Shown here piece after piece: positions 18,491 to 40,272 of a stretch of DNA of 64,000 nucleotides; position 1 is the first letter of the stretch; each line of letters starts with the position of its first letter. The stretch spans positions 122,388,001 to 122,452,000 of the forward strand of contig NC_083228.1 of the NCBI RefSeq assembly GCF_032191835.1. Direction: 5' to 3'. This DNA is from Heteronotia binoei (taxonomy: Eukaryota). A model generated the notes under the pieces. The model was not told the origin of the DNA. It saw only the letters and a list, made by a program, of their open reading frames with translations, and did no database searches. A program made the position numbers and the translations under genes.

Positions 18491-20586
18491 AGCTCTGTTA
18501 ATGTAGTTGTCACCAGCATGCTGATGACACTCAGCTATATATTTAAATAAACCACCACTCTGTCCCAGCCCAGTGTCTCAGTGCCGCGGTCAAGTAGCAG
18601 GGGAGAGAACAAACAGAAACCGCATCCAAATAAAACAAAGGTGATGCTGGTTGAAAGACCCATTGATCAAAATGGACTGTTCTTTCTACCACTTCAGGGT
18701 GCAGCTTTTGCTGAAAAATGCTGTTAAGAGTTTCCCCTCCCAAGCTACATTTAAGTAAGGAAGAAGGTTCCCTCTTTGCTGTTGCCTGAAGGCCTCCTGA
18801 TCCATGCATCAGTGACCTCAGGGCTACATTACTGTAACATACTCTGCATGGGGCTGCCGTTGAAAATTACAGCTGGTGTGAAAGCAATAGCCCATGTATT
18901 ATTGAGGCTAGCCAGTGGGACGGTATCACTTCTGTTCTGAGCTCTCTTAACTGGCTGCAACTAATTTCCAGGCCCAATTCAAAGTGCTACGCTTACCTTT
19001 TAAGCATTTAATGACCTGAGGCCCGTGTGGCTGAAGGATTGTCTCTCCTGGCACATTCTCATATGGCAGCTTTAGTCTTCTCAACAAGATCTATTGTCAG
19101 CACCTCTTTTGTCTAAGGCCCATTCTGCAGTTGTTCAGGCTTGGGCTTTTTCAATGGCTGCCTCATGTCTGTAGAACAGCTGCCTGGAAGAGGTCACGGG
19201 GACTCCTACTCTTCTGGCTTTCAAATGAGACTATAAAATTTAATCTGGAGAGCTTGTGGAGGCAGCTTGAACCTGAGAAAAATGGAGGAATACCCTCCTT
19301 TGCGGACATGCGGTGTTGCTAGGTGGTTTCTCAATTTTAAATCTCAGTATCTGACAGATTCTTTTTATATTGGCGTTACTTGCCTTTGGTCCTGATATGC
19401 TCAGGCGAAAAGTGGGTACATAAATAAGATTATCTATCATCTCCAGAACCACCAAACAGAATAGCGCACTAAAAGAAGCCTTAAGGGCATATAACCTAGT
19501 TCACAGGAGATCCTAAGATCTCACTTGCCTTCCCCACAGCTCACTCTATACTTGAGACAACTCAATAGGAGGCTATCAAGCCAAGATGGCTGGGGATACA
19601 CAGACAGCAGCTGCTCCACAACTATGGAATTTCACTGCACTCGGAAACAAGCAAAATCTAAAGACAAAACAGTTCTGCCTAGGCTTCTTGTCCATGTATG
19701 TGTGTATATGTCAAAACATTATGAAGTTAGGGGGTAGGGCTTTGTTTGTACTGAGATACATTGGGATGGATGCATCCAGCTTCTCACTCAATCCCACCCA
19801 ATTCCTTTATTTATAACAGCACCTGCTCAACATGGCTTTGATCCATGCAGTTCCCACAATCCCCCAGCACTGCCTTGTTGTTGTTAAAAGAAATCCCTCC
19901 TTCCCTTTTCTCCTGCTGAAATGTTGATTGGGTCCAACTCATTGTGTTTTTAGTGGTTTTAATTTAGCTTCACATAATCCATATTTATTTAAATCCAGGG
20001 AGCACAGCAGGCTACAACATGGAGGAGGCAGGGAGGTTTCATCCAGTAAATGCCAGCAGGTTTGTGGTGCACAGGGTCACTTCCAGTAGATATCTTTTTA
20101 AATAGGTAACAATAAAAACAAAGAAAATGAAACTAAAGGTAAACTGGATAAAAAGACAAAATGGAATAGGATACACAATGATAGTAACAGAAAAAAGGCA
20201 CCAAGTAAAAGTGGCAAATTCAATTTTTTGTTGGGGAGGGTCATATTAAGGTTTCTTTGTGAGGTCACCAGAAGGCCTGAGAACCTACACAAAAGTATTT
20301 TAAAATATCCCCCTGCTAAATATTTGAAATCTGTGGAATACTAAGTTTTATGCAATTGCAATAAAACATTCATTTGTAAGAAAATGAAGCTTAGCACGGA
20401 TAAATGCTTCCTTGATGTTCTGAAATTGATGGATATTTAGGAACCAAAATTATGGACTCATATGTCTTTCAGCTTTCAATCTTTTGGGTATACTTTTAAT
20501 ATGGGATTAAGCAATGGGAAATACAAAGTAAAGTTTAGTCAACCATGGTTAAGCATCACTGGCTGGTGGATGATACTGATGCTTTA

Positions 20587-20700
20587 TGATGTCACTGATG
20601 TCATGGAAACCATGTGTGCACACAAATGAAAATGCCATCTGCTAGTACAAGAGCATGGAAAGCTGAGAGAGGAGGCAACATCTTGAGTGGGGCAGGGTCA
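20587..20700 (+). promoter_or_regulatory. Conserved promoter/5' leader block of AKAP4-like copy 1
   Basis: 101/114 identical with no indels to 36372-36485. TGATGTCA occurs twice (20587, 20596). X-box-like GATGTCATGGAAAC at 20597-20610. Confidence 0.7.
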
Positions 20701-20762
20701 GTAAAAACTGAAACAAGAGCGCTCCACGACCCGGGGTTCAATTCTGGTTTCGGACACCTAGT

Positions 20763-22838
20763 ATGGCTCAGGAGATCGACTGGCTAAGTAGTCAAGCCGG
20801 TCTCAGCAAAGTTGATATCTACAGCGCAGAAAATCAGAAGGATCAAGATCGTAAAGTCATCTGCTTTGTTGATGTCTCCAGCCTTAACGTGAAAGACCAG
20901 AAAAGCAAGAGAGCTAACATTGCTGCCCCTTCCCCTGACCTTGACCTGAGTAATCTTGAAGAGAAAGAAGTAATTGTAATAAAGGATAAAGAGCGAAACA
21001 ACCACTCCAACACTGAAGGAGCAGTTTGCCTTTTCAAGCAAGGCTCCTCTGAAGAAGTTAACGTTGTCAGCTGGCTCAGCAACGACCTTCAGAAATACGC
21101 AGTTGGATTCCAGCATGCACTAACCCCCTCAGGGCACCGTAAACCTTCTTACGATTCCTCTGCAGTTGACAGGATGTCCCAAGGCAGCAACACATCATTC
21201 AGGGGCTCTGGTAGCCAAAGAGGAGATGACCTCTCCTATTATGTTAACAAGCTGTGTTCCTTAGTGGTTCAAATGGCACATAAAGAAATGAAGGATAAAC
21301 TTGAGAGTGGTAGATGCATTCGCCAGTCAATTAATTCTCGTGGATCTCCAAGCAAGATTTCATCCAGTGAAGATTATGGTAAGTTATCCCCAAAGACATC
21401 TCATCATGACCCCGGGAAGGCTTCACTCTTTTATGGAGAGATGTCTAATCAATCTAACGCGAATGCCTACAGACAGGGACAAGATGGACAGATGTGTCAA
21501 AGGAAACAGTCTGGACAATCAGATGATGGTTCTGTAAGCAAAGGGCTGATGGTATATGCAAACCAGGTTGCTTCAGATATGATGTTCTCATTCATGAAGA
21601 CCATGAAAGTTCAGAAAGGTAAGCACCCTCCACCAGCTTGTGTAGTCTTAAAGAAGGTACTCCTCAAACACACCAGAGATGTCATATCTGACTTAATTGA
21701 CTCCACCATGAAAAATCTTCACAACGTCACCGGAGTACTCATGACAGACTCAGACTTCGTTAATACAGTGAAGAAGAACCTTTTCAATGCGGGAACCCAG
21801 AAGTCAACTGAGATTTTGGAAGCAATGGTGAAACGCTTATTTAAAGCACTGGCAGGGGATGATAAGCACAAATCTCAAAGCCTTGCATTTGCAGCACTGA
21901 AGGCAGGTGCTCATTCAGACTCCAGATCTCAGGGACTCCAATTTGCATCGCTTAAAGGTGAACTGCACGGCCCAGGGAGGGACAGGGGTGGACAAATGAG
22001 ATCTCATCAAAGTGGAAGCAAAGGCTCAGACAAGCACTGCTCAATGGATGTGTACGCGAAGGACCTTATTGTAACAGCATTAATGTTAATTCAGCAACAC
22101 CTCCTAGAAAAAAACAAGGACCAAGGTCACCACCGTGAGACCAACACCACATCATTTGGCTATGTTCATGACAGGTCTGGTGGTGGTTCCAAACACAGTC
22201 AAAAACATGGCAGCGGGAAGCATGATGCTCATCTTGAATCACAAAAAGGTGATATATCAAGTATTCTCTTGTCAATCATCCAGAAAGTACTGAGAGAAGC
22301 TGGTTTCAGTTCAGACGAAGGATCCCCTGACAGGGGCTATAAACAGCCTTCTTTTACTGACAGCAGACAACATAAGGCCATATCAAAATCAAGCCCCGAG
22401 ATGTATGACAACATGGAACAAATAAACAAACAGTTTATTGATCAGCTGGTGGAATCCGTGATGAAGCTGTGCATGTTGATGGCTAATGGCAGCGACTTTG
22501 ATGGAAGACATGGCGGAAGACACCTAGGTTCAACAGGCTCTGAAGTGATTGTGAACAACCAGAATTCCAACAACAGTTCTCAGAACAGAGAGCTGCAAGC
22601 TGTGCTCCAGTGGTTGGTTGCTTCACAGTTCAACGTGCCCAATCTGACATTCATGAACGAGCAAGATGGTGACTTGGCCAGGCTTCCTCAGCTGGCTGAC
22701 AAAGCAGCCAAAAAAGGCTACAGCGTAGGAGATATTGTTCAGGAGGTGATGCGGTACTACGAGAAACAACAGATGGATGCCATGTCAGGGCAAATGCCTC
22801 GGTGTGGACTGGTCGATTGGCTCCTTGCTAACCTGTAA
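20763..22838 (+). CDS. AKAP4: Intronless AKAP4-like A-kinase anchoring protein, copy 1 (691 aa; AKAP3/AKAP4 family), nested antisense in PHC3 intron 6
   Basis: Single ORF with AKAP4 motifs: IDWL, DQDRKVICFVDV, TEGAVCLFKQ, DDLSYYVNKLCSLVVQMA, KGLMVYANQVASDMM, DLIDSTMKNLHNVTGVLMTDSDFV, LQAVLQWLVASQFNVP, C-terminal LVDWLLANL. AATAAA lies downstream. Strict orthology to AKAP4 is untested. Confidence 0.9.
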   Translation: MAQEIDWLSSQAGLSKVDIYSAENQKDQDRKVICFVDVSSLNVKDQKSKRANIAAPSPDLDLSNLEEKEVIVIKDKERNNHSNTEGAVCLFKQGSSEEVNVVSWLSNDLQKYAVGFQHALTPSGHRKPSYDSSAVDRMSQGSNTSFRGSGSQRGDDLSYYVNKLCSLVVQMAHKEMKDKLESGRCIRQSINSRGSPSKISSSEDYGKLSPKTSHHDPGKASLFYGEMSNQSNANAYRQGQDGQMCQRKQSGQSDDGSVSKGLMVYANQVASDMMFSFMKTMKVQKGKHPPPACVVLKKVLLKHTRDVISDLIDSTMKNLHNVTGVLMTDSDFVNTVKKNLFNAGTQKSTEILEAMVKRLFKALAGDDKHKSQSLAFAALKAGAHSDSRSQGLQFASLKGELHGPGRDRGGQMRSHQSGSKGSDKHCSMDVYAKDLIVTALMLIQQHLLEKNKDQGHHRETNTTSFGYVHDRSGGGSKHSQKHGSGKHDAHLESQKGDISSILLSIIQKVLREAGFSSDEGSPDRGYKQPSFTDSRQHKAISKSSPEMYDNMEQINKQFIDQLVESVMKLCMLMANGSDFDGRHGGRHLGSTGSEVIVNNQNSNNSSQNRELQAVLQWLVASQFNVPNLTFMNEQDGDLARLPQLADKAAKKGYSVGDIVQEVMRYYEKQQMDAMSGQMPRCGLVDWLLANL

Positions 22839-22989
22839 GAACCAACTCTTCCCTCTCCTGTTACTTGGTGCCCAGCTCAAGCGCCTAAACCATTTCTTCC
22901 TGGCGCAGTAGACAACCACCACCACCCCCATTGCAAGCAACAACTCATTGACTTGAACTGATTAAACTGGGTGGCTGGGCAAGCTCATC

Positions 22990-22995
22990 AATAAA
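22990..22995 (+). terminator. Polyadenylation signal of AKAP4-like copy 1
   Basis: AATAAA about 150 nt after the stop, in a context (ctgggcaagctcatcAATAAA) shared with copy 2 and followed by an A-rich run. Confidence 0.7.
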
Positions 22996-25689
22996 AAAAG
23001 AATAAAAAAAAAAGCGGAGACAGACTGTTTTATTGATCGCTTTAACAAAGCTTTATAAACAATCGGGTTCCATCTAGCTATATTATTATTTATACAAGCC
23101 TAAGCAATCCAAAAATACTATATTAAGAAAATACAAACTGTAAGGTGTGGACAGTCTCCCAGGATTTCTAGCATCGCCATAGGCTGATAAGGAAACCAGG
23201 GAGGGAGAGATAGGATCAGAGAAAGACTAGGAAGCGAAAGCTATGGGTGATTCCACCAAGCACGTTATCACAGCAGTCCTTATTTTCAGCCACAGCTGTT
23301 AGGAAAGTAGTAGTTGGTCCAACTTTCCAGATGGCTGCAAATGAGATTGTGTTAAATTTTGATTCCCATTGGAGTCTTAGAACTGTCGCATTCCATCCGC
23401 ATCTATTTAAAGGTAGAACGAAGCATCCTGTGGTCCTTATGAAAATCTCTTAGATCCAGAAAATAAATGGGGGTAGCGCATTAGACTTCTCTGTTCTTAA
23501 AAGATCCTCTTTGCTACTGTTCATGTCTTTCTCAGAGCAGGAGGAGAATTCAGTGAATAAGCTATTATGCAGCCTTGCTCACTGTGACCTTTAATGGAGA
23601 CTCCACTTCTCTGGTTTCCTTACACTGATGCTCAGAAAAGAAAATTATAAACTCTTCACTGCTGAGGTGGGATCATACCACATCTCCCTTGTTCAATTGG
23701 TGAATTGTGCTCATTTTTTCTGGGCCTTACAGAGTAACATATCTAAAATCATGAAGGATTTTTTTTTTCAAGAAACATACTGCTTGATGCCAAAAGGCAG
23801 AAGAGTGGGGAAAATGAATGGGAGGCCCACAGTTTGAGCTAATGAGATACAGTTTGCTTCTATGGAACATCTGGATAGGCCTATATTCTAGTTCCATTCA
23901 ATGCACCCTCGTTTCTCTTGGTCTCCCTGGCATAGTAAATATGCCTTTATAATGACTGAGGTCTAATGCTAAACTGCAGACAATACAGTTTTTTGAACAG
24001 AGATTATAGGAGCATCAGCCTGGTGTGCACTGTCTTAGACCTGCATCTTGTTCATTCTTGCATAATGAAAAAAACCAAAAATTAATTATCTGTGCTGGCT
24101 GGAAGCGTCAATATTTATCTTCTGTGAACTAAACCCAATGTGTTAGTATACCACAGCACACTGTGGAAAATAAAGGCTCACTGGCGGCTTGTTTACAGCA
24201 AGGAAGCTTGAGGACAGGAAGACGATGGAGACTGCTATAAAACATGGGTATTTTCAAGATATAGTGTGCTAATGAGTTTGCATTTAAAACTTTACATATT
24301 TTTCAGGTATAAAACATTTGCCATCTATCTATCATTCATCCTTTAGAATGAACAGTAAATACAAATTGCAAACGCCTCCTATTTTCTATCCTCCTACCAT
24401 CCATGGTGCCATCTACAGAGCGTACGGCCTAATATTTTGTTTTTTAAAAATTCAGTTTTCATGGTAATTTATTTTCTGGTTCTGAAATCTCTGCACAAGA
24501 CTCACCCAGTATCAGTGGTTGACAGGCTTGGGGAGTCTGATAGTAAAGATCCACTTAAGGGCCCACAGTCAACTAGCATCACCATTTTGGCTCTCTTTGT
24601 CCAGTGCTCCTGACCATGTTAACCCCTAAGCCAAGGAAGAACACACCCTAGGAATTCTTTACTCACTTGTGCAACCTCCTCTTTTCTTTAGTGCATCTCA
24701 CACTAATATACACCAAGTAAATTATGACAGCAATCATATGAGGGCTTCAAAAGACTGCAGTCAGCCTTGGTACAAGAGCATACATAAGCAAGGCAAAAAT
24801 CTTTTAATGCAAAATTTTGCCTCCTTCCACAGGGCAACAACTAAGTAGTTTTAAGTACCACTGTGAATGCAAAGACATTCATGCCTGCCATAAGGTGTCC
24901 ACACAGGAATCTTTCGTGTGTGTTGCACACTGGAAGTGCCATTCTCCCGCAAACAACCTGGGGGCTTTTTTAAAACTAGTAATTGCAGAATTGCTATGGC
25001 AATCATAACACTATAGCAATAAAACAATAACCTGATTTTTTTAAAAAAATGGAGGAAAGCCCTGTGATGGCTCGGCGGGGGGAAGGGAGGGGGGAGGAAG
25101 AAGCAAGGGGATGACAGTCATCAGGGGTCTAAACCAAAGACAACGGTACCAATGTGAGCGGCGCGCAGCCTGCAAAAATGTGCACCTTCCTGGGTCAACA
25201 CAGCATGCACGCACAAGCTGACTGTGATCTTTCCAAAAAGAATGCTATCACACCAGGTTTGGGAAAGATTTGAGCAAAACAGGGAAGTTTGGCTAGTGGA
25301 CCATTAGGAGATGACCTTGTGTGAAGGCTAAAAAAAACTCATTTAAGTCCACACTAGAAAAACCGCAGTGTGGAGGCAACTTTAATGTGAAGGTCAGTAT
25401 AATGCTCTAACAAATCTGATGGAAGCAAACAGGATTGGGGTGGGGGAGAAGACAAGAATATTCAGCAAGTGCAAGAGAACTAGTACTCAGTTGACTATCT
25501 GGTACTCTAACGCAAGGCAGACAATGAGCACAAAAGTATTTTGGACAGAGGTGCTGTTATTTTAGGAGACTGTGTCAGCAAATTTAAACACTGCTTACTG
25601 CAAGTATTCCTCTTTCCTTTCTTAGCTAGCCTGCTGCTTAAGCTAAAATTAAAGGGTGGGAGCACATTCAGCCGGGGCTCCGGGGATTG

Positions 25690-26213
25690 CACTGGCTGCC
25701 AATAATATACCAGGTTCGGTACAAGGTGCTGGTTATCACCTTTAAAGCCCTATATGGCCTAGGACCGACCTACCTACCTTAGGGACCGTCTCTCCCCACA
25801 TGTTCCCCAGAGAGTGCTTAGATTTGGTTCCCAAAATCTGCTAGTCATCCCCGGGCCAAAGGAGGCCCGTCTGAAGTCAACCAGGGATAGGGCCTTTTCA
25901 ATTACAGCCCCCTGCTGGTGGAACCAGCTACAGAAGGAGGTGAGGGCCTTGCGGAACCTTGGGCAGTTCCGCAAGGCCTGTAAGACGGTCCTCTTCCAAT
26001 TGGCATATAACTGACTGGTACCTAAAAACTGCGAAGGAAGGCTGTAGAATGCACCGTACTGTTAGATTGTTTTCTTGTTTTGACTGTTGTAAATTATTCA
26101 ATGTATTTAATATTTATTAACCTTATTGTTTTGAATTTTATGTTGTAAGCCACCCTGAGCCCACCTTGGTGGGGACGGCGGGATATAAGTCGAACAAATA
26201 AATAAATAAATTT
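25690..26213 (+). mobile_element. L2-type LINE 3' fragment with (AATA)n tail
   Basis: HWLP...YKVLVITFKALYGLGP...DRAFSITAPCWWNQL reading, with tail gttgtaagccaccctgagccc...aataaataaataa. Confidence 0.8.
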
Positions 26214-26491
26214 TTAAAAAGTAACAATAATGTAAAACTAACAATATAAACATATTGAAAATACAAACAGAACACAGACATTAAAAATGTCCTTACACTC
26301 AACGAAAGCTTGCTAAAATTCATGCTGATTTTGAAAAACGCACCATCTTGGATTCTGGCAGACTATCAAAGAGAAGAACATCTGGAGCAAGAATGTCCTT
26401 TCACATCCTGACTTATTGTTTCTTAACATATGCACTAATAAATGAGCAGGAGGGAAGGCAGCGTGGTATAGCACAATCTCATCAGATCTTG

Positions 26492-26859
26492 GAAGAAGGA
26501 GAAGATGATATTGGATTTTATCACGCCCTATACTCTGAATCTCAGTCTCAGAGCGGTCACAATCTCCTTTTACCTTCCCTCCCACAACAGACACTGTGTG
26601 AGCAGTGTTACCTGCACATTTTTGTCTTAGCTCAGGAAGGATGACCCCAGAGCACAATAATTTATAGAGTAGCTCACAACTTTAATGTCAGTAGCTCACA
26701 ACTTTAGTGCCAGTAGCTCACAAAGTAGAATTTTAGCTCACAAACCTCTATGGCTGACCCAAGGCCATTCCAGCAGCTGCAAGTGGAGCAATGAGGAATC
26801 AAACCCGGTTCTCCCAGATAAGAGTCTGCACACTTAACCACTACATCAAACTGGCTCTC
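26492..26859 (-). mobile_element. Squam3-like SINE containing a hAT MITE fragment (about 26612-26745)
   Basis: Both SINE halves match 7986-8262. The insert has agtagctcacaa repeats related to the 16630-17060 MITE. Confidence 0.75.
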
Positions 26860-26883
26860 AGAAGCTAAGCAGAGACCACCACT

Positions 26884-27346
26884 GATAGAGGTTTACAAGC
26901 TTATGCTTGGGATAGAGAAGGTAGAGAAAGAAGTACTTTTCTCCCTTTCTCACAATACTAGAACTCATGGACGTTCAATGAAATTGCTGAGCAGTCGGGT
27001 TAGAACTGATAAAAGGAAGTACTTCTTCACCCAAAGGGAACACGTGGAATTCACTGCCACAGGAGGTGGCAGCAGCTACAAGCATAGACAGCTTCAAGAG
27101 GGGACTGGATAAGCATATGAAGCAGAGGTCCATCAGTGGCTATTAGCCACAGCATATTGTTGGAACTCGCTGTCTGGGGCAGTAATGCTCTGTATTCTTG
27201 GTGCTTGAGGGGGGCATAGTGGGAGGGCTTCTAGACCCCCTGGTGGACCTCCTGATGGCACTTGTTTTTTTTTTTGCCACTGTGTGACATAGAGTGTTGG
27301 ACTGGATGGGACATTGGCCTGATCCAACATGGCTTCTCTTATGTTC
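26884..27346 (+). mobile_element. CR1 3' fragment, same family as 14819-15580
   Basis: SLSHNTRTHG...YFFTQR peptide and the shared 3' UTR ending gcttctcttatgttc. Confidence 0.88.
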
Positions 27347-28369
27347 ACCAAGGGAAAGTCAGAAGAGGAAAGCAATGACTAGCTACCTTTGTTTTTCACT
27401 TGTCCTGAAAGCCCCGTGCTGGGGTTGCTATAAACTGGCTGCAATTTGACAACACATTACATGCACAATAAATAAGCCTCATCAGTCAGTCTCTGAACCC
27501 ATGGCACAACACAGAAAAGGTAGTTTCTAAGGTTGAAGTTTTCAAATGATAGGGTAAGCCTCGGGGCGGGGGGGGGGAGACAAGAAGAAGCTTGAGGAAG
27601 CACATGACTTTCTCCTACATCAATTGAGATATAGATATAATGGCACAGTTGTCAAAGAAACAAGGTAGCCCTGGCACGAGCACATGCCCAATCCATCTAC
27701 CTGCAAATTGCAATGGACTATACGAATTCAACTCTGTGTAATAAACTCCAGGTGCTCAGTCCTAGAGCAGACCATTGGAGACCCAGAAGGTAAAGCAAGT
27801 CTGATCTAGTACATTCATTGTATGGCACCACTTCTCAGACTGTCTCCAACATGCCATGAAATGCCTTTCTCTCCCCCTGCCTGTTTTATTTCTGTATTGA
27901 ACACAACACTTCCTATTTTATGACCACTGGAATAGTCTTAGCATTGCTATTAAACAACATACCTGTGAGACTTTGCATGTGTCTGGCGTTTCATTCCAAC
28001 TGGGCTGCTCCCTATGTAAAGGGGCTATGCAAGTATAGTTAGCACGCCAGGTGGCATACGGATGTACTAACCAAGCTGCTTTGCATGCATAGCAGCACTA
28101 TTTAAACAAGAAGCTGAATATGATCAAAAGTGCCACTAGATCCAGGTGGGCAGCCGTGATAGTCTGAAGCAGCAAGAGTCAAGTTGCACCTTTAAGACCA
28201 ATGAAGCTTAATTCAGAATGTAAGCTTTCGTGTGCTCTAAGCACACTTCATCAGACAATAGTATGGAATGGCAAGCAGTCCTAAATATAAAGTCCTAAAT
28301 AAAGTGACACTGTTTTTATTTTCATCAACATCATGTTTAAATTAGGCTAAAAGAATAGGAATGGCTTGA

Positions 28370-28530
28370 AGGTTATTTATAAAATTATGTACAGTTTTGA
28401 GAGCACACAGAGATTCTTCCTTCTCTTCAATAATACTAGTATTTCATGTCATCTAATGGAACTGATCTGCTGTATCCTCAGAACAGATAAAAGGAACTGC
28501 TATTTCACACAGTGCATGCTTGATGACATG
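28370..28530 (+). mobile_element. Old, decayed CR1 ORF2 C-terminal fragment
   Basis: VIYKIM...RTDKRNCYFTQ resembles CR1 EVYKIM...RTDKRKYFFTQ. Confidence 0.5.
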
Positions 28531-28678
28531 ATCAATAGCACTTTTATTAAATTTTATTTAATTGATTGATTGATTTTAAACTTGTCAGAAATTTGAATGC
28601 TGGATGTAACTTCGTTTTTATATAATGCTGTTAGCCGCCCTGAGCCTGCTTCGGCGGGGAGGGCGGGATACAAATAAA

Positions 28679-28680
<2 letters not shown>

Positions 28681-28756
<76 letters not shown>
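28681..28756. repeat. (TATC)19 microsatellite at the tail of an L2-type 3' end
   Basis: 76 nt of perfect TATC units directly after gttagccgccctgagcc...gggatacaaataaaat. Confidence 0.97.
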
Positions 28757-28758
<2 letters not shown>

Positions 28759-29121
28759 GATTTATGGAATTCTTTAGCATAGCATGTAGTTAGAAAAACT
28801 TAGAAAAATGGACTTAGAAAAACGGATTTCAACAAGACCATTACATTTTTGTAATAATAGCCTGGTGAACAAGGCTATTAGCCACAGTAAACAAATATAA
28901 CTTCAGGTTAAAGCTTGGGTAATCCTAAATGCTAGATACTGAAGATTTAAAGACAATGAGGGAGAATCATTACTTTCTTTCCCCGTTTCAAGGAGACATC
29001 AAGCTCATTAAGGTTGGAAACAGGATGATGGAATACATGGATTCTTGGCTGGATGGACCAAACTTCTTATAGGAGGAAGTCCCAGTAAATATTGTAGGAT
29101 GTGTTCTGATGTAAACAAACA

Positions 29122-29328
29122 GGGGCTGTGGCTCAGTGGTAAAACCTCTGTTTTGCATTCAGAAGGTCCCTGGTTCAATCCCCAGCATCTCCAGTTAAAA
29201 GGACCAGGTAAGCGGTGATATGAAAGATCTCTGCCTGAGACCATGGAGAGCTGCTGCCAGTCTGAGAAGACAATACTGACCTTGATGGACCGATGCTCTG
29301 ATTCAGTATAAGGCAGATTCACATGTTC
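29122..29328 (+). mobile_element. tRNA(Ala)-derived SINE (Squam2-like)
   Basis: Head ggggctgtggctcagtggt...ggttcaatccccagcatctcca. The body recurs at 3988-4180, 59131-59342 and 61803-61982. Confidence 0.75.
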
Positions 29329-29674
29329 AAATAAGGTCTTAAAAAGCTGAGAAATTATGTAAGTTACTTGGGATCCCCGCACTTGGGAGAAAGATAGAGT
29401 ACAAGTGAAATTAATAATAATAATAATAAAAAAACAAATGTTACCTATACATGTGGACTTCTCTGTCAAGTGAGTAATCCTGTTCTACTGGTGTGCATAA
29501 CTTGTGTACACAAAACATTTGTCTGCACCAGGGATGGGCATTAACCGGTTGATGAACTAAATTTTGTCACAAACGTTGGCCTGTTCAAGCTTTTCTAGCT
29601 CTTTGGTTTAAATGGCTCCAAGTGTCTTCAACAACACTGCTGCCAACAGTGAGTAAGCAACAGCAGTTCCCTTT

Positions 29675-29731
29675 GGGGGTTGGACTAGATGACCCTAGAG
29701 GTCCCTTCCAACTCTATGATTCTATGATTCT
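29675..29731 (+). mobile_element. CR1 extreme 3' end
   Basis: gggttggactagatgaccctagaggtcccttccaactctatgattctatgattct. Confidence 0.75.
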
Positions 29732-32700
29732 TGCCAGAACACCTGTAGAAGAATATGAAGCACGTGCTTCAGAAAGGACTCTTCAGGCTGCTCCCGACTG
29801 TATGTGCTGCCGGTACAGAGACAGAAGGAGAAGAGAGGCTTAATTTCCTGGGAAGTCACTAATATTCTAAGGATTGGGTGCAAATAATCTACAGACTAAT
29901 TTTTCTCGGGCCACTGAGGCTAAAATGTTAGTGGAATATTGCCATGTTAACAGGTCAGTGGGGCAGGAGTGAATGAACATCATTTATTCATGTTGACAGC
30001 TGGTACAGCACAACATCTAAGACAGAGCAAAAGTCCCTAGTTTAAAACTCACTAGGGAAGGCTCACACTATCAACCTCAGTCCCACCCACCCCCCCATAT
30101 GAGACAGGGGAATAACAACACTGATTTACCTTATAGGGTGGTGGTTCAGATTTCAGCAGTGGAGCACTCTAAAGTGATGTCTGAATTGTTTTAACTAAAA
30201 CTAGAAGAACCAACAACTTATGAAGAGAGACAGTACTCACCATTTATGCAAGACTGCAACAGGGTCTGTCTTCACTTTTTAAACTCCCAGTAAGGGGAGC
30301 TCTTTTTCAGCCACTGACTTCCAAGAACTTGAAACACCTCAATTTGCCTACTTAAGCAGGGAGCAATTTTCTCCCTAGAAAATGTTTGAGTCTTGCTTCT
30401 TCTGTTTTTTGTTATTAGCCAATTAGTGATAGATAGTCCTTTGTCCTGAAGCAGCATTCCTCAAGAGGCTTTAGCATAGACTCGGCCCCAATCATCCCAT
30501 TGGTCTACCACCAGTTAAGGTCCTAGATCTTTGCTTAGGTAACTGTCAGTTTCTGGTCTAGGCTATCTGGCTCTCTTCTCTACTGCTATCCATAGCAATG
30601 TATCGGAATGCTTCATATTTTCAAAGGATTACAGGATATTTAAAGCATGTCATGTAGTTCTCGATAATCATGACAACACCCATTTAATGCTACTTACCTA
30701 TAGCCCAGTGGCTGGCACTTTGATGTGGTATAAGTGTGTCTACGATTCACATACTGGCCAAGTTAACATTTCAGAAGAAAGTTGACAGGTAAAGGGAGGG
30801 GGGAACAAATAATTTGAAAGTACATATTCTCTCGATATCAACAGACTGTCATAGGACAACACCTAAACTCTCTTCCTAGCAAATACTGAAATTTTTCTAA
30901 AGTTTTAGGTGAAATAAATAGTAAAATGATTTATTTAGTCTACTATACTCTGTACTGTAAGTCTTAATACAGGTGAGCTCTACAGACTTCAGCACTGTCT
31001 GCTACCTCTTCTTCATGAACCAAGGGACATTACCATGCTTTTTGGAAAAAGCAGCACAAAATTTCCCAGTGGCAGCAAGCTGTTCATATTGAATGATGAG
31101 ATTGCATAAAACTCTACTGTGGGTGAATAGGAAGTTGTTAAATAATACAGCAGAAACTGTATCCATGGCAACTCTTCTCCTTGCAGCCCTAATTTGCAGC
31201 TCCAAAGATCCTTGTTGCGGAGCAAGATGCTTTTTAAAGTTTATTATTGGCTGTTTGTATGCAGCCTTTCCATACTTGACTGGTATACATGAATTAACAT
31301 TAACTGAGCAGCAGTCTCAACTGTTTTACATCACTGAAATGGTCTATTCTGGCTTAATTAAAAGTTCAGCAAAATTAAGAGTCACACTATACAAAAATGA
31401 TGGAATATTTACAAACAGATCTCTTTTTCTTTTTAAAAAAACTGCACATAGCAGGTTCAAGGGAACAGGATACATTCAGATCAGGGCCATGGAAAGAAGT
31501 CTTACTCATTGTTCTTCATGCTGTTTTTATACTACCAGTTTCCTCAGTGGGCGTATTTTCCCACACCCAGAAAAAAAAAATGTAGTAGCCTTCCCTCTTC
31601 ATTCCTATGAGCAGGCTTCAATGTTCTAAAGATAGATGGGACATCTGTATGCTTCAGAAATTCTACAGGCACAGAGAAAAACAGAAGCACATCACCCTTA
31701 GAGTGTCCTCCAGCCCCAGAACAATCCTCTTCAAGCTTTTAGGAGGAGTCCCTTCTCTCACTCACAGCACCAACATCCCCAAAAGAAGCTGGGATACAAT
31801 TAATCCCAGTCCTCCTACACAATGGGGTTTGGTAGCCAATGCGACATTTTCATGCAGAGTATGGCAAGGGAAGAAAGTATGAAAAGACCAGAGCACATGC
31901 AAAGACAACATTCTTGGTTTTAACACCACAATCTGAGCAAAAGAATGGTCTGCTGCACTATTTGAAGACAATGATTCTAACTCCTGTAAATAGAAAACTA
32001 GGAAGGATTCACAGCTGGCCTTTGTGAATTCTTATTATTCTTCCACATGAAATCCCCCTTTAGTAGGGAGAATTCAAAGCAGCAACCCCCCCCCCCATAC
32101 CCTGAACACGCATGCCACCAGCATAAAGTAACACAGTCCAGGAAATGCTTTACCACTTAATCTTAAATTGGTTTTATGACTCTGCAGCCAATTATGGAAA
32201 GAAGATTAATCTCAGGCCAATTTGCATGCCTTTGAACTGTCAGATGCTGGCTACTGAATTGCTGAATGCTGAATCTGCTGCTACGTGATTAATACATTTT
32301 TTTCTTCATACCCATATTTTTGTTCACTCTGAATCGCTCAACATCGTTTTGGAGGATACGCTTTAAGAACATAAGAGAAGCCATGTTGTGTTTAAAACAA
32401 TTTATTATAATGTAATATATTGTAATAGCATATTATCATTTGTTATTAAAAGTTAATACACATTCATTACATTTTTTCCACTCCTCCCCCCTTTTAGTGA
32501 CCCCTGGCAGTGCCAACCCCATAAGAGAAGCCATGTTGGATCAGGCCAATGGCCTACATAGGGAAACAACTAAAAGCCTGCTCTACCAAATTTTTAGGAA
32601 AGAGTAAGAGTCCAGTTACAGGTATCTGAAGCAGTGACTCACTAAAGCTCATACCCTGCTGCAAATGTTGTTAGTCTTTAAGGTGCTACTTACTCTTTTC

Positions 32701-32764
32701 TGATGCTACAGACTGTCCTGATCTACTAACATTTTATCATTCTTAACTGCCCAGATCCACCCAC

Positions 32765-32945
32765 ATCTCATCAGATCTTGAAAGCTAAGCTGAGGCAGCC
32801 CTGATTAGTACATGGAGGGGAGACCACCAAGGAAGTTCAGGGTTGCTTTGCAGATGCAGCCAATAGCAAACCACCTGTTTGCCTCCTGCTTTGCAAATCC
32901 TATGGGGTTACCATAAGTCAGCTGCAACTTGACAGCACTTTACAT
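32765..32945 (+). mobile_element. 5S rRNA-derived SINE
   Basis: atctcatcagatcttgaaagctaagc...ttagtacatgga...gagacc resembles the 5S internal control region, followed by an RTE-like tail gcaaaccacc...ggggttaccataagtc. Confidence 0.65.
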
Positions 32946-32991
32946 ACAGACAACCGTATTATATCCAGATTTCAGAAAACATACCCTAAAG

Positions 32992-33594
32992 CAGGGGCGT
33001 CAAACATGTGGCCCGGGGGCTTAATCAGGCCCCTGGAGGGCTCTCAGGCCCCCTGAGCATCTGGCTGTCAACTGCTTCCTTTTCCCCCTCCCTAGATTCC
33101 TTCTGCATAACAGCTTGTTTTGCAAGTCTTGCTCAATCGCACAGGAGCTACAGAGCCAAACCTCTATTTTCTCCATTAGCTGAGGCTCCTCCCTTAGGGG
33201 GATGGAGAACTTGCTTTGCCAGGCTCTCTCAATTGCACAGCAGTGCTACTGAGCCAAGCCTCTCTTCCTTTTATTGGCTGAGGCTCCTCCCCTTCCTCAT
33301 CCCCTAGAGAAGAAAGGAAAGAGCCAGAGCTTCCTTTGCCCAGTTCCCTGGATCCCATGGGAGAAATACAAAGAAAGCCCCTTAAAGACCAACGAGTACT
33401 AATGTTTTCAGCATGTTTTAAGGGTTTTTTTTTTTAAAAAAACTCTTTAATTGTGTTTGTCTGTGTCCTTTATAAGGTTTATATCTCTGCTACCTAATCT
33501 TAAATATTTACACATGTAGCCTGGCCCAACATGGCTTGACAAGGTCTCATTTATGTCAGATTCGGCCCTCATAAGAAATGAGTTTGACACCTTG
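32992..33594. mobile_element. hAT Charlie-like MITE
   Basis: TIRs CAGGGGCGTCAAAC / GTTTGACACCTTG. 8-bp TSD CCCTAAAG at 32984-32991 and 33595-33602. Confidence 0.85.
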
Positions 33595-33984
33595 CCCTAA
33601 AGGCTACAAATATGAACTGGCAATGAAGTTTTATATATGCACACTCATACGTTTTCTATTAGCATGGTCAATACCGGGTGGAAGGTGATCTAATGTTTTA
33701 ATTCTAGCACTTGGCTTGTTTATTTTATGGATTTAGTTTCTTCAGTTTCATTTTGTTAGCTGCAACATTTGTGACTGTTGGGATGATTATACTTTAACTG
33801 AAAGGCTGTTTTACGGGTCCTTGTGAAAAAAGCAGGGTACAAATACTGACAACCAAAAAGAGAGAGAAGTCTGTTAAGTCTTTGGGGCTTGAATGAGATG
33901 TTTGGTTTGAGACCCAGATTGCCAAAAGAGAGAGAGAAACACAAACAAATAAGGTGATCTGGTGTCTCAAGATTGCTGGTCTGA

Positions 33985-35409
33985 GAGATATCCCAGAAGA
34001 TTGGAAGCAGGCGAATGTTGCCCCCATCTTCAAGAAGGGGAAAAAAGAGAATGCGGGTAACTACCGACCCGTCAGCTTGACGTCTATACCTGGAAAAGTT
34101 TTAGAACAAATCATCAAACAGTTGGTCCTGGAACATTTAGAAAGAATGGATGTGATTACTAAGAGCCAGCATGGGTTTCTCAAGAACAAGTCAAGTCAGA
34201 CTAACCTGATCTCTTTTTTTTGCTGGATCGGAGGAATGCGGTAGACATCGTTTATCTTGATTTCAGTAAGGCTTTTGATAAGGTTCCACATACTATCCTT
34301 GTTGACAAGTTGGTAAAATGTGGTTTGGATCCTGTTACCGTTAGGTGGATCTGTAACTGGTTGACAGATCGCACTCAAAGAGTGCTTGTGAATGGTTCCT
34401 CATCCTTTTGGAGAGAAATGACAAGTGGAGTGCCTCAGGGATCTGTCCAGGGACCTGTTTTGTTCAACATCTTTATCAATGATTTGGATGAAGGAACAGA
34501 GGGAATGCTTATTAAATTTCCAGATGATACTAAATTGGGAGGGGTTGCAAACACAGATGACAGAAACAGGATACAGGATGACCTTGACAGGCTGGAAAAC
34601 TGGGCTAAAACCAATAAAATGAATTTTAACAGGAATAAATGTAAAGTTCAGCATTTAGGTAGGAAAAATCCAATGCATGGTTATAGAATGGGGGAAACTT
34701 GTCTTAGCAGTAGTATATGCGAAAAGGATCTAGGGGTTTTAGTGGATCATATGCTGAACACGAGTCAACAGTGTGATGCGGTGGCTAAAAACACAAATGC
34801 AATTTTGGGCTGTATCAACAGAAGTATAGTGTCCAGATCATGTGATGTGATGGTAATCACTTTGCTCTGGTAAGACCTCATCTGGAGTATTGTGTTCAGT
34901 TTTGGGCACCACAGTTTAAGAAGGATATAGACAAGCTGGAACGGGTCCAAAGGAGGGCGATGAAGATGGTGAGGGGTCTGGAGACCAAGTTCTATGAGGA
35001 AAGGTTGAAGGAACTGGGGATGTTTAGCCAGGAGAGGAGGTGGCTGAGAGGTGATATGATCACCATCTTCAAGTACTTGAAGGGCTGTCATATAGAGGAT
35101 GGGGTGGAATTGTTTTCTGTGGCCCCGGAAGGTAGGACCAGAAACAATGGGTTGAAATTAAATCAAAAGTGTTTCCGGCTCAACATTAGGAAGAACTTCC
35201 TGACCATTAGAGCTATTCCTCAGTGGAACAGGCTTCCTCGGGAGGTGGTGGGCTCTCCTTCCTTGGAGATTTTTAAACAGAGGCTAGATGGCCATCTGAC
35301 AGCAATGAAGATCCTGTGAATTTAGGGGGAGGTGTTTGTGAGTTTCCTGCATGGTGCAGGGGGGTTGGACTAGATGACCCTATAGGTCCCTTCCAACTCT
35401 ATGATTCTA
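33985..35409 (+). mobile_element. Degenerate CR1 LINE of a second subfamily (RT domain, frameshifted)
   Basis: NYRPVSLTS, YLDFSKAFDKV, GVPQGS, and KFPDDTKL (FADD motif mutated). 3' end ttccaactctatgattct. Confidence 0.92.
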
Positions 35410-36371
35410 ATGTGGTGACTGTCAGCTACAAAGCCTCTTTCCTCATTATTTCTTCAGCAGAAACAAGACAAACTGCAATTTCTCTTGCTCTTTAGTAAGA
35501 GAGCCCCACTTCTCAATCACTGTCCATTAAGACATATAGCTCTCAATTTAAATTATTATATGCCTGGTACACAGAGTATTATTTGTTGCATGAGAACAAC
35601 TTAGAGAACACTAAGTTGGCTAATATTTTCTACAGGAAGCAATGTCAGCTGGAGAATATGCATAAGTTTTTATGAGCATCTCAGAACTCCTCTTTAGGCA
35701 AAACGAGGAGTGAAAGACGATGTCAGACATAAGCTAACATCACCTCACCTCGAACAGGTCCTCTGGAGAGAACAGGCATTTTCTAAATAAAAATAAATGT
35801 ATCTCCATACTGTTCCCTTAAGCAGATTATGATAAATCTATCAATGACCACTAGTCAAAGCAGCTAAAAACTGTCCACAACAGCTGCTTTCTAAGATGAG
35901 AAGTGGCAAACTTCTCATTTGTCCCTTTATGTACCAGGAAGGTCCTTTCTGCTGTGTGCATGCACCCCATGCAGTACAGCAGTTTGTGAGTAGACTTGTT
36001 GGTGAAGAGGTGTAACCTTTCATGTCAGCAGATCTATTCATATAAATATAGCTCCATCCTGCCACTTAAAATATCCCCCCCCCCCACACACACACGTCGG
36101 AGTTACGTGAGAGTCAGTGCCCACCAACTGTGTTTCAAAGCCTTCGTCATTATGGTGAGAAAGACATTATGATTAAATGTAGAAATCAACCACTCCCAGT
36201 TCTCAAACATTAGTTGCAGTGAATGCATCATTAATTTCCCAATACACACACACACAAAATTTCTGATAGGTCGAATAGGAGGGATGCTGGGGGTGGGAGA
36301 GAGACTATTTATCAGTCCCTTGTTAAATAACTGAAACTGTACCAGTGATAGCAGGCAATGCTGCTTCTTTG

Positions 36372-36485
36372 TGATGTCACTGCTGCCATAGAAACCATGT
36401 GTGCACACAAGTGAAAATGACATCTGGCAGCAGAAGAGCATGGAAAGTTGAGAGAGGAGGCAACATCTTCAGTTTGGCAGGGTCA
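36372..36485 (+). promoter_or_regulatory. Conserved promoter/5' leader block of AKAP4-like copy 2
   Basis: Paralogue of 20587-20700. TGATGTCA at 36372-36379. X-box-like GCTGCCATAGAAAC at 36382-36395. Confidence 0.7.
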
Positions 36486-36556
36486 TCAAAGCAGCTTAGG
36501 TGAGAAAGAACATCCCCTACGGTCCTAGGTACAGTTCTACTTCCAAGCCTCAAGTG

Positions 36557-38899
36557 ATGTCTCAGGAAGTTGACTGGTTACACAGCCAAGCTGGCGTGTG
36601 TAAGGTAGAGCTCTACAATCCTGAAGCAGGGAAAGACCAGGACCGGAAAGTGATTTGTTTTGTTGATGTCGCCAGCCTGAACATAAAAACAGATGATAAA
36701 GATGCTGCTGGCCAGTCCAAAGACAATGAACCTGCCACAGGACTTGATCTGGGGAAAATGCAGGACAAAGAGGTAATTGTAATAAAAGATAGTGAGACAC
36801 CCGAGCAGTCTAAGACTGAAGGAGCAGTATGCCTTTTCAAACAAGGTTCAACAGAAGAACTTAATGTTGTGACCTGGCTCTTTGATGACCTGCAGAAATA
36901 TGCATGTGGATTTCAACATGCACTGACCCCTTCAAGTGCCCCTCATCAACCTAAGCCATCAGCAGCTGACAAGATGTCCCAGAATAACAACAACACGGCT
37001 TTCAAATCTTCCAGTGGTCAGAAAGCACCTGCAGATGAAGTAGCAGGCACCGTCCAAAAACTCTGTTCTTTGGTTATGCAAATGGCTAGTAAAGAGATCT
37101 CTGAAAATCTGGAAGATGCAGCCAGCAAGTGTATACGCCAGGCAATTTATGCGACAAAAGATGGGAAACCTCTCAATCCTGGTTCTGTAAGTCAGGTTGC
37201 ATCCAAGATGGTGAATGACGCTATGGAAAGTGCTCAGGACCCCAGCGCTAAATCATCTCAAGACAATATTTCAGGCAAGAAGGAAGAAGGTAAAGGAGGT
37301 CCCAAGAAAACCTCTCTCTTTTATGGTGAAGTATCTTCCAACCAAAGTGAGTCTATTCAGGAAGAAGACAAGCCACCATGTACCCAATTGATTTACCCAA
37401 AGAGACAGTCAGCTCGCAATGATGGTAGTTCTTTTAACAAAGGGCTAATGGTTTATGCAAACAAAGATGCTAAGGATATGACATTTTCATTTGTGAAGGC
37501 CACAAAGGTTCACAAGAGGCAACCACTGCCAGCCTGTGTGGTTTTGAAAAGAGTATTCCTAAAGCACACAAGGGATGTCATATCAGACTTAATTGACTCT
37601 ACTATGAAAAATCTACATAATGTTACTGGGGTCCTCATGACAGACTCTGACTTTGTTACTACAGTTAAGAAGAATCTCTTCAATGCAGGAACCCAGAAGT
37701 CTACTGAGATTTTAGAAGCAATGGTACTACGAATGTATAATGCTCTGATGTCAGAAACTAAGGACAAAGGGCATAGTCTTGTATACTCTTTACTGAAAAC
37801 AGGATGTTCAATGGACCCAAATACACAAAGTATGCATTTCGCATCTCTGAAAGGTGGACTACATACGAGGGAAAAGGGAAAGGAGACAGCACACTCATCA
37901 GCCCAGAAAGTAGGTGAGACAATAATTAAAGATGGAATTAGCATGCTACGCTCAAAAACATCAGGAGGCAAAGCTTCAGACAGGGGAAGTCATGACAGGA
38001 GGCCAGAGAAAAGCAATTCCACAACTGAATTTCTAGCAAAAGACCTCATCTTGACAGCTTTAATGTTGATACAGCAGCATCTGTTAACTCAATACAAGGA
38101 ACCAACTTCTGAGTCAAATACCTCTTCGTTTGGGTATTTTGAAAAAGGAGGCAAACATGGTTCTAGATCGCATGGTTCCAAGGGTGATCCACACCAACAA
38201 GAATTTCAGAAAGGAGAAATACAAAGTGCTCTCCTTTCTATCATCTCAAAGGTCCTACAGGAGGCTGGCTTCAATGTAGATGAGTGTGAGATAACCAAGA
38301 AATCCAATACATGTGATGACAGGACTAGCAAAAAGTCTTCATCCAAACACTACAATGCAGAGGTGGACTCTGAAAACATGGATCAAATAAACAAAAAATT
38401 CATTGATCAGCTGATGGAATCTGTGATGAAGCTGTGTATGTACATGACTAAAAGCCCCGATTTTGTTGTGGAAGATTACTCTGACGAACAAGGAACATAC
38501 TTTACTGCAAGAAACAAAGGTGCATCGACTCCAGATTCAATGACATCACAGAAACCTCCACGAACAACATCTATTGGAAAGCCACTGGTGCCTGCTGGCT
38601 CTGAGGTGATCGTGAACAACCAGAGTTCCAATACCAGTTTGCAGAACAAAGAGCTCCAGGCTATCCTCCAGTGGATGGCTGCCTCCCACTTCCAAGTGCC
38701 CAACCTCACATTCATGAATGAGAATGACGAGGAACTGAAGAAGCTTCCTCAGCTTGCGGAAAAAGCAGCTAAGAAGGGCGCAAGCGTGGGAGATATTCTG
38801 CAGGAGGTAATGAGGTATTTCGAAAAACAACAGATTGATGCCGCTGTGGGAAACATGCCTCGTGGCGGACTTCTCGACTGGTTGCTTGTTAACCTGTAG
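36557..38899 (+). CDS. AKAP4: Intronless AKAP4-like protein, copy 2 (780 aa from ATG 36557), nested antisense in PHC3 intron 6
   Basis: The ORF track starts at a GTG (36500). The ATG at 36557 (MSQEVDWL) aligns with the copy-1 start (MAQEIDWL). Same family motifs through LLDWLLVNL. Strict orthology is untested. Confidence 0.9.
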   Translation: MSQEVDWLHSQAGVCKVELYNPEAGKDQDRKVICFVDVASLNIKTDDKDAAGQSKDNEPATGLDLGKMQDKEVIVIKDSETPEQSKTEGAVCLFKQGSTEELNVVTWLFDDLQKYACGFQHALTPSSAPHQPKPSAADKMSQNNNNTAFKSSSGQKAPADEVAGTVQKLCSLVMQMASKEISENLEDAASKCIRQAIYATKDGKPLNPGSVSQVASKMVNDAMESAQDPSAKSSQDNISGKKEEGKGGPKKTSLFYGEVSSNQSESIQEEDKPPCTQLIYPKRQSARNDGSSFNKGLMVYANKDAKDMTFSFVKATKVHKRQPLPACVVLKRVFLKHTRDVISDLIDSTMKNLHNVTGVLMTDSDFVTTVKKNLFNAGTQKSTEILEAMVLRMYNALMSETKDKGHSLVYSLLKTGCSMDPNTQSMHFASLKGGLHTREKGKETAHSSAQKVGETIIKDGISMLRSKTSGGKASDRGSHDRRPEKSNSTTEFLAKDLILTALMLIQQHLLTQYKEPTSESNTSSFGYFEKGGKHGSRSHGSKGDPHQQEFQKGEIQSALLSIISKVLQEAGFNVDECEITKKSNTCDDRTSKKSSSKHYNAEVDSENMDQINKKFIDQLMESVMKLCMYMTKSPDFVVEDYSDEQGTYFTARNKGASTPDSMTSQKPPRTTSIGKPLVPAGSEVIVNNQSSNTSLQNKELQAILQWMAASHFQVPNLTFMNENDEELKKLPQLAEKAAKKGASVGDILQEVMRYFEKQQIDAAVGNMPRGGLLDWLLVNL

Positions 38900-39044
38900 A
38901 CAAGAGCCAACACCTCCCTCTCATTACTTCCACCCAGCGAAGTGCCAACTTAGTTATCGGATGAACAACCATACAGCACATTTTGCATAGACAACAGTTC
39001 ATCAAATTCCACAGGCTGTAACACACTAGCTGGGCAAAGTCACC

Positions 39045-39050
39045 AATAAA
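39045..39050 (+). terminator. Polyadenylation signal of AKAP4-like copy 2
   Basis: AATAAA about 145 nt after the stop, context ctgggcaaagtcaccAATAAA. Confidence 0.7.
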
Positions 39051-39924
39051 AAAATACAAATGTCAACTGTTACTGATTTGTTTATTAATTTGTATGTAGA
39101 TATGATCAAAGGGGGGGGATATCCATGTAACAGTCATAACCTCCTTTTAGGACTCAATGGTTTTAAATCTAGACCATTCTTGTAACTAATAAGTATCAGA
39201 CAACATGCCCATTCCATTCTGCTTCAAAACTTCTATCTTCCTTTCCCGTACTGGAACAAAACATTCAAAGCTGGGTGACAAACTCTTACTTACTGAACTT
39301 CGTGAACATCTATTTGTACCTTTATGTGGAGCAAATCACTGTAATTCTTATCACCTTGATTGTTAAGGAGAATAATGAAACAATTCTCAGATTCACCAAT
39401 ATACACCATTTCCCCAAGAGTAACTATTAAAACAGTCTTGAATTTTATCTGTCATTTCACAGTTTTACTGCCTAATGAAGCAAAGATAGGAGGAGGATAG
39501 AGTATCTTGGTTCACGCAATGACCTGTAATGTTATCCATATCCTGAAGCTCCACTGCTTCACCAACCTTCACTCCAAATGTTAAAATATTCTTTAAAAAA
39601 CAACAAACAAATGTAGACGTCTACAAAATTGGCTCGTTCCTCAAACACCATCAAAATTCTTCTCCTACTGCCTCAGATTTACTTAAATTCTGCAAAACCT
39701 ACATTAATCTGTTTTAGAATAATGAAAAGAAGAAAATGTAGGCCTTTTGAGTTATTTGACGTAGAATTTCACTGATGCCAATTTTTGTTTTACCTGGTTT
39801 GATAAATATAGAAATGTAAAAGGCAAGACGAACTAGGGTAAATGAATGATATAAGCAGATTTAAAGCCATTTCATCTATCACAGTTTGGGATAAGTTTCA
39901 TTAAGACTATCCAGAAACGTGGAT

Positions 39925-40110: not shown

Positions 40111-40272
40111 CACACGCACATCTAGCACAGTATTTTTTTTAACCTGCCCTTCCTCCAAGAAGTCCAGGGAGGTGTACTTTGCTCTGCACTCCTATTTTAT
40201 TCCCACAACAACCTTTCATGAATACCAGGCTGAGAGAGAGTCACAAGCTCAGAATCATCCAAGTCATCTTCA

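Follow-up and report, generated by a model that had tools for sequence, protein, structure and literature searches.

How did two protein-coding genes without introns come to lie, on the opposite strand, inside a single intron of PHC3, a Polycomb gene, in the gecko Heteronotia binoei? The locus was analyzed in a stretch of 64,000 nucleotides (GCA_032191835.1, record CM063330.1; free of any N), here called the window, whose numbering is used throughout. The two genes, designated A and B, encode proteins of the AKAP4 type. In mammals, AKAP4 forms the principal structural component of the fibrous sheath of sperm and is indispensable to motility. We consider it quite probable that both genes go back to a retrocopy of a spliced AKAP4 mRNA, which inserted antisense into PHC3 intron 6 by the time of the common ancestor of lepidosaurs, turtles, and crocodilians, replaced its parent, was duplicated in tandem, and now supplies functional scaffolds of the sperm tail.

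Gene A was listed as a plus-strand open reading frame (ORF) of 691 amino acids (20763–22838) and gene B as one of 799 amino acids counted from a GTG (36500–38899), or 780 from the ATG at 36557. ORFs of approximately 700 to 800 codons cannot have arisen by chance in DNA of 42% GC. Both proteins scored above the gathering score of the Pfam family AKAP_110 (PF05716; 25 bits), with 271.9 bits for A (E = 1e-80) and 260.5 bits for B (E = 4e-77). They aligned with each other from end to end at 51% identity. A search of PDB sequences with protein B gave no match. An earlier note, made by a model from the letters alone, had described two intact, uninterrupted plus-strand ORFs of 691 and 780 amino acids, each with its own leader and AATAAA signal, and the ORF listing and motif positions agree with it (Table 1). 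Its count of 41 identical nucleotides out of 60 over the first 20 codons, with changes mostly at third positions, was reproduced exactly (11 of the 19 differences fall there).

The host was called as a minus-strand gene of 973 amino acids with zf-FCS and SAM domains that spans the locus. It was identified as PHC3 from protein matches of its largest exon (11559–12452), which hit only polyhomeotic-like protein 3 (human, pig, mouse, and tree shrew); a protein search with a PHC3 exon against the protein atlas returned no usable match. Intron 15895–43240, number 6 in the count of the earlier note, is the largest PHC3 intron in the window. The two AKAP4-like units, from leader to AATAAA (20582–22995 and 36367–39050), lie wholly within it on the opposite strand, i.e. 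they are nested antisense. This arrangement, as the earlier note had proposed it, is now confirmed by splice sites and by the protein matches of the host.

Protein searches revealed two sets of squamate orthologues, both reaching from geckos to snakes: a B type of approximately 780 amino acids (79–95% identity) and an A type of approximately 680–700 amino acids. In both groups, the ORFs were intact in every squamate lineage sampled. Beyond squamates, the searches returned several copies each in turtles and crocodilians and one in tuatara, followed by mammalian AKAP4 at 41–42% identity; the best full-length matches outside reptiles were likewise mammalian AKAP4 (42%). The turtle Mauremys reevesii carries two copies (822 and 791 amino acids) approximately 37 kb apart, each a single uninterrupted coding sequence (CDS) and both antisense inside one PHC gene of 1005 amino acids. 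In Alligator mississippiensis, an intronless copy of 794 amino acids lies antisense in a PHC gene of 979 amino acids. A second alligator copy (829 amino acids), also intronless, is found approximately 7 Mb away, outside any called gene, and has kept the leader. Since nested intronless copies occur in turtle and alligator, the nesting is at least as old as the ancestor that lepidosaurs, turtles, and crocodilians share, at approximately 280 million years. The nesting is thus older than the squamate gene pair that had been supposed.

Several further members of the family were noted in these searches. Alligator has at least five AKAP4-type proteins, which form one crocodilian-specific clade (loci L003:10001–12490 and L010:10001–12385 on CM061338.1). 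A third intronless AKAP4-like gene of H. binoei, on another chromosome (L006:10001–11602, GCA_032191835.1 CM063345.1), encodes 533 amino acids with 55% identity to A, has the same conserved leader, and is placed basally to squamate A in the tree, on a long branch. Its homology ends at residue 523 of A, and MEHINKQ, left over from the next conserved block, stands behind the stop codon; the C-terminal domain has thus been lost or has decayed. Colubroid snakes have a conserved 'AKAP4-like' protein of 336 amino acids, consisting of the C-terminal part only, and tinamous an AKAP4-like protein of 372–373 amino acids (clusters P0132 and P0127). No AKAP4-type protein of neognath birds turned up in the protein searches, which would be in keeping with the simplification of the fibrous sheath described for neognath sperm (PMC11276731).

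The exon structure of mammalian and avian relatives was then set against that of the reptile genes. Rat Akap4 spans 10 kb and contains five CDS introns, all of phase 0, after amino acids 9, 41 (DRKV/ICFVD), 57, 91 (SK/TEG), and 796 (EK/LPE). The AKAP3 gene of tinamou, which adjoins an NDUFA9-like gene, has two phase-0 CDS introns. The donor of its first intron aligns with rat position 41/42 and the acceptor with 91/92, and its last intron aligns with 796/797. Three splice positions of rat Akap4 are thus common to AKAP3, and the introns concerned must predate the split between AKAP3 and AKAP4. All seven reptile copies examined consist of a single uninterrupted CDS without any of these introns. 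No PHC gene lies within 10 kb of rat Akap4. In the tammar wallaby, AKAP4 is X-borne (PMC3046482), which places the intron-bearing gene elsewhere in therians.

A second line of evidence came from the sequences flanking the CDS. Approximately 190 nt upstream of the ATG are conserved in every reptile copy. Across six reptile copies, conservation rises from background between approximately −245 and −190 and ends approximately 180 nt beyond the stop codon, where a CTGGGCAA...AATAAA block is common to these copies and rat. From approximately −187, the reptile leader matches rat L005:9818–9961, which covers part of exon 1 and the sequence immediately before it (E = 2.6e-8 to 7e-8), and the region of the reptile ATG matches rat exon 2 at 13527–13558, beyond an intron of 3501 nt. 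A motif common to both (GGCAGGGTCA in reptiles, GGAAGAGTCA in rat) lies 59–71 nt from the reptile ATG and 74 nt from the donor of rat exon 1. The collinear leader and the matching motif distances imply that the reptile genes keep the spliced junction of exons 1 and 2. Taken together, homology bounded like an mRNA, total loss of introns, and a different locus make an origin from processed mRNA the best reading. The earlier note had arrived at a retrocopy as well: the three junctions it remembered as intron sites and found contiguous here (DRKV/ICFVD, SK/TEG, and before the terminal LPQ) are all real intron positions of rat Akap4, the junction of exons 1 and 2 is fused, and the homology it traced from approximately 180 nt upstream to the poly(A) signal corresponds to the conserved leader of approximately 190 nt and the end at AATAAA.

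The leader of gene A begins with CTTTATGATGTCAC and contains TGATGTCA twice in tandem at 20587–20603; gene B has this octamer once, at 36372–36379, with ATAGAAAC at 36388–36395, and the turtle and alligator copies also have a single octamer at the start of the leader. The block shared with rat starts with this octamer, which resembles a cAMP response element (CRE; TGATGTCA in reptiles, TGCTGTCA in rat), followed by the TATA-like ATAGAAAC. Strong dependence on CREM was seen for mouse Akap4, which falls by approximately 5.5 log2 units in Crem knockout testis (PMC3285179). In the same table, Akap4 is marked 'No, No' in two columns that we take to denote CRE presence and CREM binding (PMC3285179), and for this reason TGATGTCA is not relied on as a CRE. 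If transcription started upstream of the CRE-like and TATA-like motifs, the whole block would be 5′ untranslated region (UTR) and the copy a clean retrocopy. A start site downstream of them would mean that a core promoter was carried along. This would require that the source transcript had begun further upstream, or it would favor loss of introns in place with relocation of the mammalian gene. In rat, an upstream start codon adds MIAYCGTTK before MSDDIDW (exon 1, L005:10001–10027); this segment aligns with non-coding reptile leader, where there is no ATG, and the extension of nine amino acids looks specific to mammals.

To place the reptile genes relative to AKAP3 and AKAP4, 53 proteins were analyzed with IQ-TREE. 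AKAP3 was set apart from all other sequences (support 95/99), and all reptile sequences grouped together as the sister of mammalian AKAP4 (90/81). The copy was therefore derived from AKAP4 and not, as the earlier note had it, from an ancestor of AKAP3 and AKAP4. Within the reptile clade, turtles formed two clades and crocodilians one; squamate B made up a further clade on a long stem (0.62), and tuatara joined A in a lepidosaur clade (98/99). A clade restricted to squamate A and B was rejected by the approximately unbiased (AU) test (p = 0.003; the group was named after the tree had been seen). The best tree contains a clade of all lepidosaur copies with weak support (75/91). Since tuatara belongs to the A lineage, the split between A and B took place before tuatara and squamates diverged. 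Two copies in the same intron bear out the tandem duplication of the earlier note; its squamate date is contradicted by the position of tuatara and by the AU test. Gene conversion could blur any signal that the turtle and squamate pairs stem from one duplication.

A gene of the frog Ascaphus truei (L008, CM079555.1) was considered as an outgroup to AKAP4 and rejected. It is a multi-exon gene of 917 amino acids downstream of FKBP15, with AKAP_110 similarity confined to the C-terminus, i.e. a distant member of the family and not an AKAP4 orthologue. Together with relatives in lungfish, newt, and coelacanth (the last named 'SI:DKEY-171C9.3'), it appears to represent a branch of its own whose members are poorly named. 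A study of AKAP evolution has placed the debut of AKAP4 in tetrapods and that of AKAP3 in amniotes (PMC12083921).

The ratio of nonsynonymous to synonymous substitution rates (dN/dS) was 0.20 (NG86) or 0.27 (YN00) for B compared with a gekkonid relative whose sequence is 93% identical (dS = 0.14–0.17), and below 0.6 in all other pairs. The purifying selection that the earlier note had suspected is thus evident. In alignments with mammals, both helices that tether protein kinase A (PKA) are nearly unchanged in A and in the tuatara, turtle, and crocodilian copies (DDLSYYVNKLCSLVVQMA...; SKGLMVYANQVASDMMFSFMKTMKV). Fixed substitutions in both helices are common to all B proteins of squamates (DEVAGTVQKLCSLVMQMA...; NKGLMVYANK[D/N]AKDMTFSFV), with SYYVN changed to AGTVQ and QVASDMM to KDAKDMT. 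With the Pfam model RII_binding_1 (cut-off 18.8 bits), rat scored 21.7 bits and A 13.5 bits, the latter below the cut-off, and B gave no match. Judged from these sequences, A is probably the conservative, functional equivalent of AKAP4. B may be read as a paralogue that diverged and was then frozen by selection, probably with a changed capacity to bind PKA or those related sperm proteins that dock through the same domain.

In the gecko Hemidactylus flaviviridis, an Akap4 expressed sequence tag (EST) was obtained from active-phase testis and found to be up-regulated by quantitative PCR (qPCR) (PMC4795608). The forward primer of that assay matches 36441–36460 exactly and the reverse primer matches 36525–36544 with one mismatch; near gene A, the reverse primer had no match at up to three mismatches. 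The resulting amplicon on the B leader is collinear with the genome and measures 104 bp, with 105 bp given in the paper (PMC4795608). The primer positions indicate transcription of the B leader in gecko testis during active spermatogenesis. Logan contigs from four public runs were also inspected over 34000–39900. Two metatranscriptomic runs labelled as RNA yielded scattered pieces of low depth, some inside and some outside the gene, and in two runs of a relative, of unrecorded library type, contigs were collinear with the genome past both gene ends. A Logan contig (L011, SRR13336341, 3140 nt, 93% identical to B) was rejected as an mRNA. It is collinear over 36085–39176, extends past the AATAAA, lacks a poly(A) tail, and is probably DNA; it served for the dN/dS estimate only.

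Taken as a whole, the data suggest the following course of events. A spliced AKAP4 mRNA, comprising 5′ UTR exon 1, the coding exons, and the 3′ UTR, would have been reverse-transcribed and inserted antisense into PHC3 intron 6, no later than in the common ancestor of lepidosaurs, turtles, and crocodilians. The retrocopy would have stayed functional and apparently displaced its multi-exon parent in reptiles. Repeated tandem duplication in the same PHC3 intron would have followed, with A and B separating earlier than the divergence of tuatara from squamates. In all likelihood, each gene is transcribed in testis after meiosis into an unspliced mRNA of approximately 2.4–2.7 kb, under its own conserved proximal region, and its product is a scaffold of the fibrous sheath in the sperm tail that may bind PKA.

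Several points count against this scenario. No poly(A) remnant or target-site duplication was recognizable in the alignments, as expected after more than 250 million years. The CRE-like and TATA-like block, if it is promoter and not 5′ UTR, would mean that the copy carried a promoter, unlike a plain retrocopy. The direction of relocation is deduced from intron loss alone. That the multi-exon parent seems lost has a single basis, namely that no second reptile AKAP4 lineage appeared in the protein searches, the reptile region syntenic with the mammalian X locus not having been searched. Finally, the expression data concern the B orthologue of Hemidactylus and not gene A or H. binoei itself. The promoter-like block lends itself to an alternative history, in which the PHC3 intron is the ancestral amniote AKAP4 locus, all introns of the reptile gene disappeared in situ through recombination with a cDNA, and the therian gene reached the X by a DNA-based event. 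Loss of introns in place would keep such a block, and AKAP3 and PHC1, both on human 12p13, could hint at an old linkage between AKAP and PHC genes. However, this history needs two rare events, the complete loss of five introns including the 5′-most one and a relocation of DNA, against one retroposition. Moreover, rat homology stops at approximately −187 and at the poly(A) region, as in a copy bounded by an mRNA, and AKAP4 is X-borne in both marsupials and eutherians. We therefore regard an ancestral locus in PHC3 as improbable.

The history proposed in the earlier note, a squamate-specific retrocopy of an AKAP3/4 ancestor followed by tandem duplication within squamates, agrees with the finding of two adjacent intronless genes in a squamate. 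However, turtle and alligator carry nested intronless genes of the same kind, the sister of the reptile clade is AKAP4 and not AKAP3 plus AKAP4, and both the place of tuatara within the A lineage and the AU test speak against a duplication confined to squamates, so that we give this history almost no credence. It is equally far-fetched that one or both ORFs are non-functional retropseudogenes still open by chance. Such a view could draw on the fact that direct evidence of expression covers neither gene A nor H. binoei itself, but it is contradicted by ORFs that are intact in both paralogues throughout the sampled squamates, by dN/dS values of approximately 0.2–0.3, by a leader and 3′ UTR conserved above synonymous sites across reptiles, by the match of the Hemidactylus testis EST and qPCR to the B leader, and by the failure to find another AKAP4 lineage in reptiles.

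Coordinates of the nested genes and of the adjoining parts of their host are compiled in Table 1. Besides these features, long ORFs with endonuclease and reverse transcriptase of the LINE (long interspersed nuclear element) type were seen at 45153–47813 on the minus strand, within the PHC3 intron that precedes the host intron. A reverse transcriptase fragment lies at 34220–34873 on the plus strand between the two AKAP4-like genes, and a high-copy repeat at 34000–35575 showed very deep contig coverage in all four runs.

Table 1. Nested AKAP4-like genes and adjoining PHC3 features in the window
Feature	Position	Strand	Evidence
PHC3 exon downstream of host intron, peptide VQNLTLRS...IHQLIAP	15655..15894	-	Minus-strand translation
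PHC3 intron (intron 6 in the numbering of the earlier note), holds both nested genes	15895..43240	-	Canonical donor ACTCAG/GTGAGC after 43241, acceptor TCTTTAG/GTCCAG before 15894
Gene A conserved leader, 5′ UTR, possibly including core promoter	20582..20762	+	Conserved in gecko, turtle, and alligator copies and in rat Akap4 exon 1
Gene A CDS, 691 amino acids, conservative AKAP4-type paralogue	20763..22838	+	ORF, Pfam, tree, helix alignment
Gene A 3′ UTR to AATAAA (22990-22995)	22839..22995	+	Alignment, motif coordinates
Gene B conserved leader	36367..36556	+	Reptile and rat conservation; site of Hemidactylus testis qPCR amplicon 36441-36544
Gene B CDS, 780 amino acids, derived paralogue of squamates (long stem, both tethering helices altered, strong conservation afterwards)	36557..38899	+	ORF, Pfam, tree, dN/dS, alignment
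Gene B 3′ UTR to AATAAA (39045-39050)	38900..39050	+	Alignment, motif coordinates
PHC3 exon upstream of host intron, at least this part, peptide LIFTPATT...CQSAATQ	43241..43339	-	Minus-strand translation

Compared with known systems, the gecko genes are closest to mammalian AKAP4 (pro-AKAP82, the major fibrous-sheath protein, X-linked and multi-exon). They share with it (i) full-length homology at 41–42% identity and the AKAP_110 matches; (ii) the N-terminal MSxxxDWLHS...DRKVICFVDV and C-terminal ...LLDWLLxNL blocks; (iii) tethering helices A and B, nearly identical in paralogue A; and (iv) homologous 5′ UTR exon 1 and 3′ UTR to AATAAA. Unlike mammalian AKAP4, they lack introns (five CDS introns in rat), lie antisense in PHC3 and not on the therian X, are tandem paralogues, lack the upstream start that adds nine amino acids in mammals, and have substituted helices in B. 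AKAP3 (AKAP110) belongs to the same Pfam family and has the same large central exon and a similar C-terminus, and its two CDS introns match three AKAP4 splice positions. It differs in forming a separate clade (95/99) and, in a bird, in retaining introns beside an NDUFA9-like gene and not PHC3. With orphan retrogenes and nested intronic genes, the pair has in common a processed copy at a new locus, in an opposite-strand intron of an unrelated host, under purifying selection and with no parent lineage detectable in the same genomes. Unlike typical orphan retrogenes, it is unusually old, being present in lepidosaurs, turtles, and crocodilians, it was repeatedly duplicated in the same intron, and promoter-like motifs may form part of the block it shares with its parent. 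Orphan nested retrogenes are a known kind of system and not a new one. The locus is a well-supported and apparently undescribed example that was amplified in tandem within a host intron. The novelty that the earlier note had claimed does not extend to the genes, as they are already annotated in many reptile genomes, most squamate orthologues as "A-kinase anchor protein 4" or "4-like", and may hold for their evolutionary reading. In the literature searched, no paper describing the PHC3 nesting or the retro-origin was found, none mentioned AKAP4 together with PHC3, and AKAP4 papers mentioning "retrogene" or "intronless" concern other genes.

The known workings of AKAPs or of retrogenes are not changed by these findings. 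If reptiles run AKAP4 function wholly from a PHC3-nested retrocopy, this would be a clean and very old case of a retrogene replacing its parent, with a nested gene pair stable in one intron across major reptile lineages. The leader common to the rat gene offers a way to ask how the retrocopy acquired spermatid expression. A more far-reaching version, which we find attractive and lean towards with some reserve, holds that every reptile lineage examined makes AKAP4 only from one PHC3 retrocopy that replaced the parent and kept the CRE-like and TATA-like leader, and that squamate B then changed both helices and was frozen by selection. Were this true, a new fibrous-sheath component would accompany the squamate-specific architecture of the sperm tail. 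The A/B pair, with conserved helices in one protein and altered PKA-tethering helices in the other, provides a natural experiment on the specificity of AKAP anchoring.

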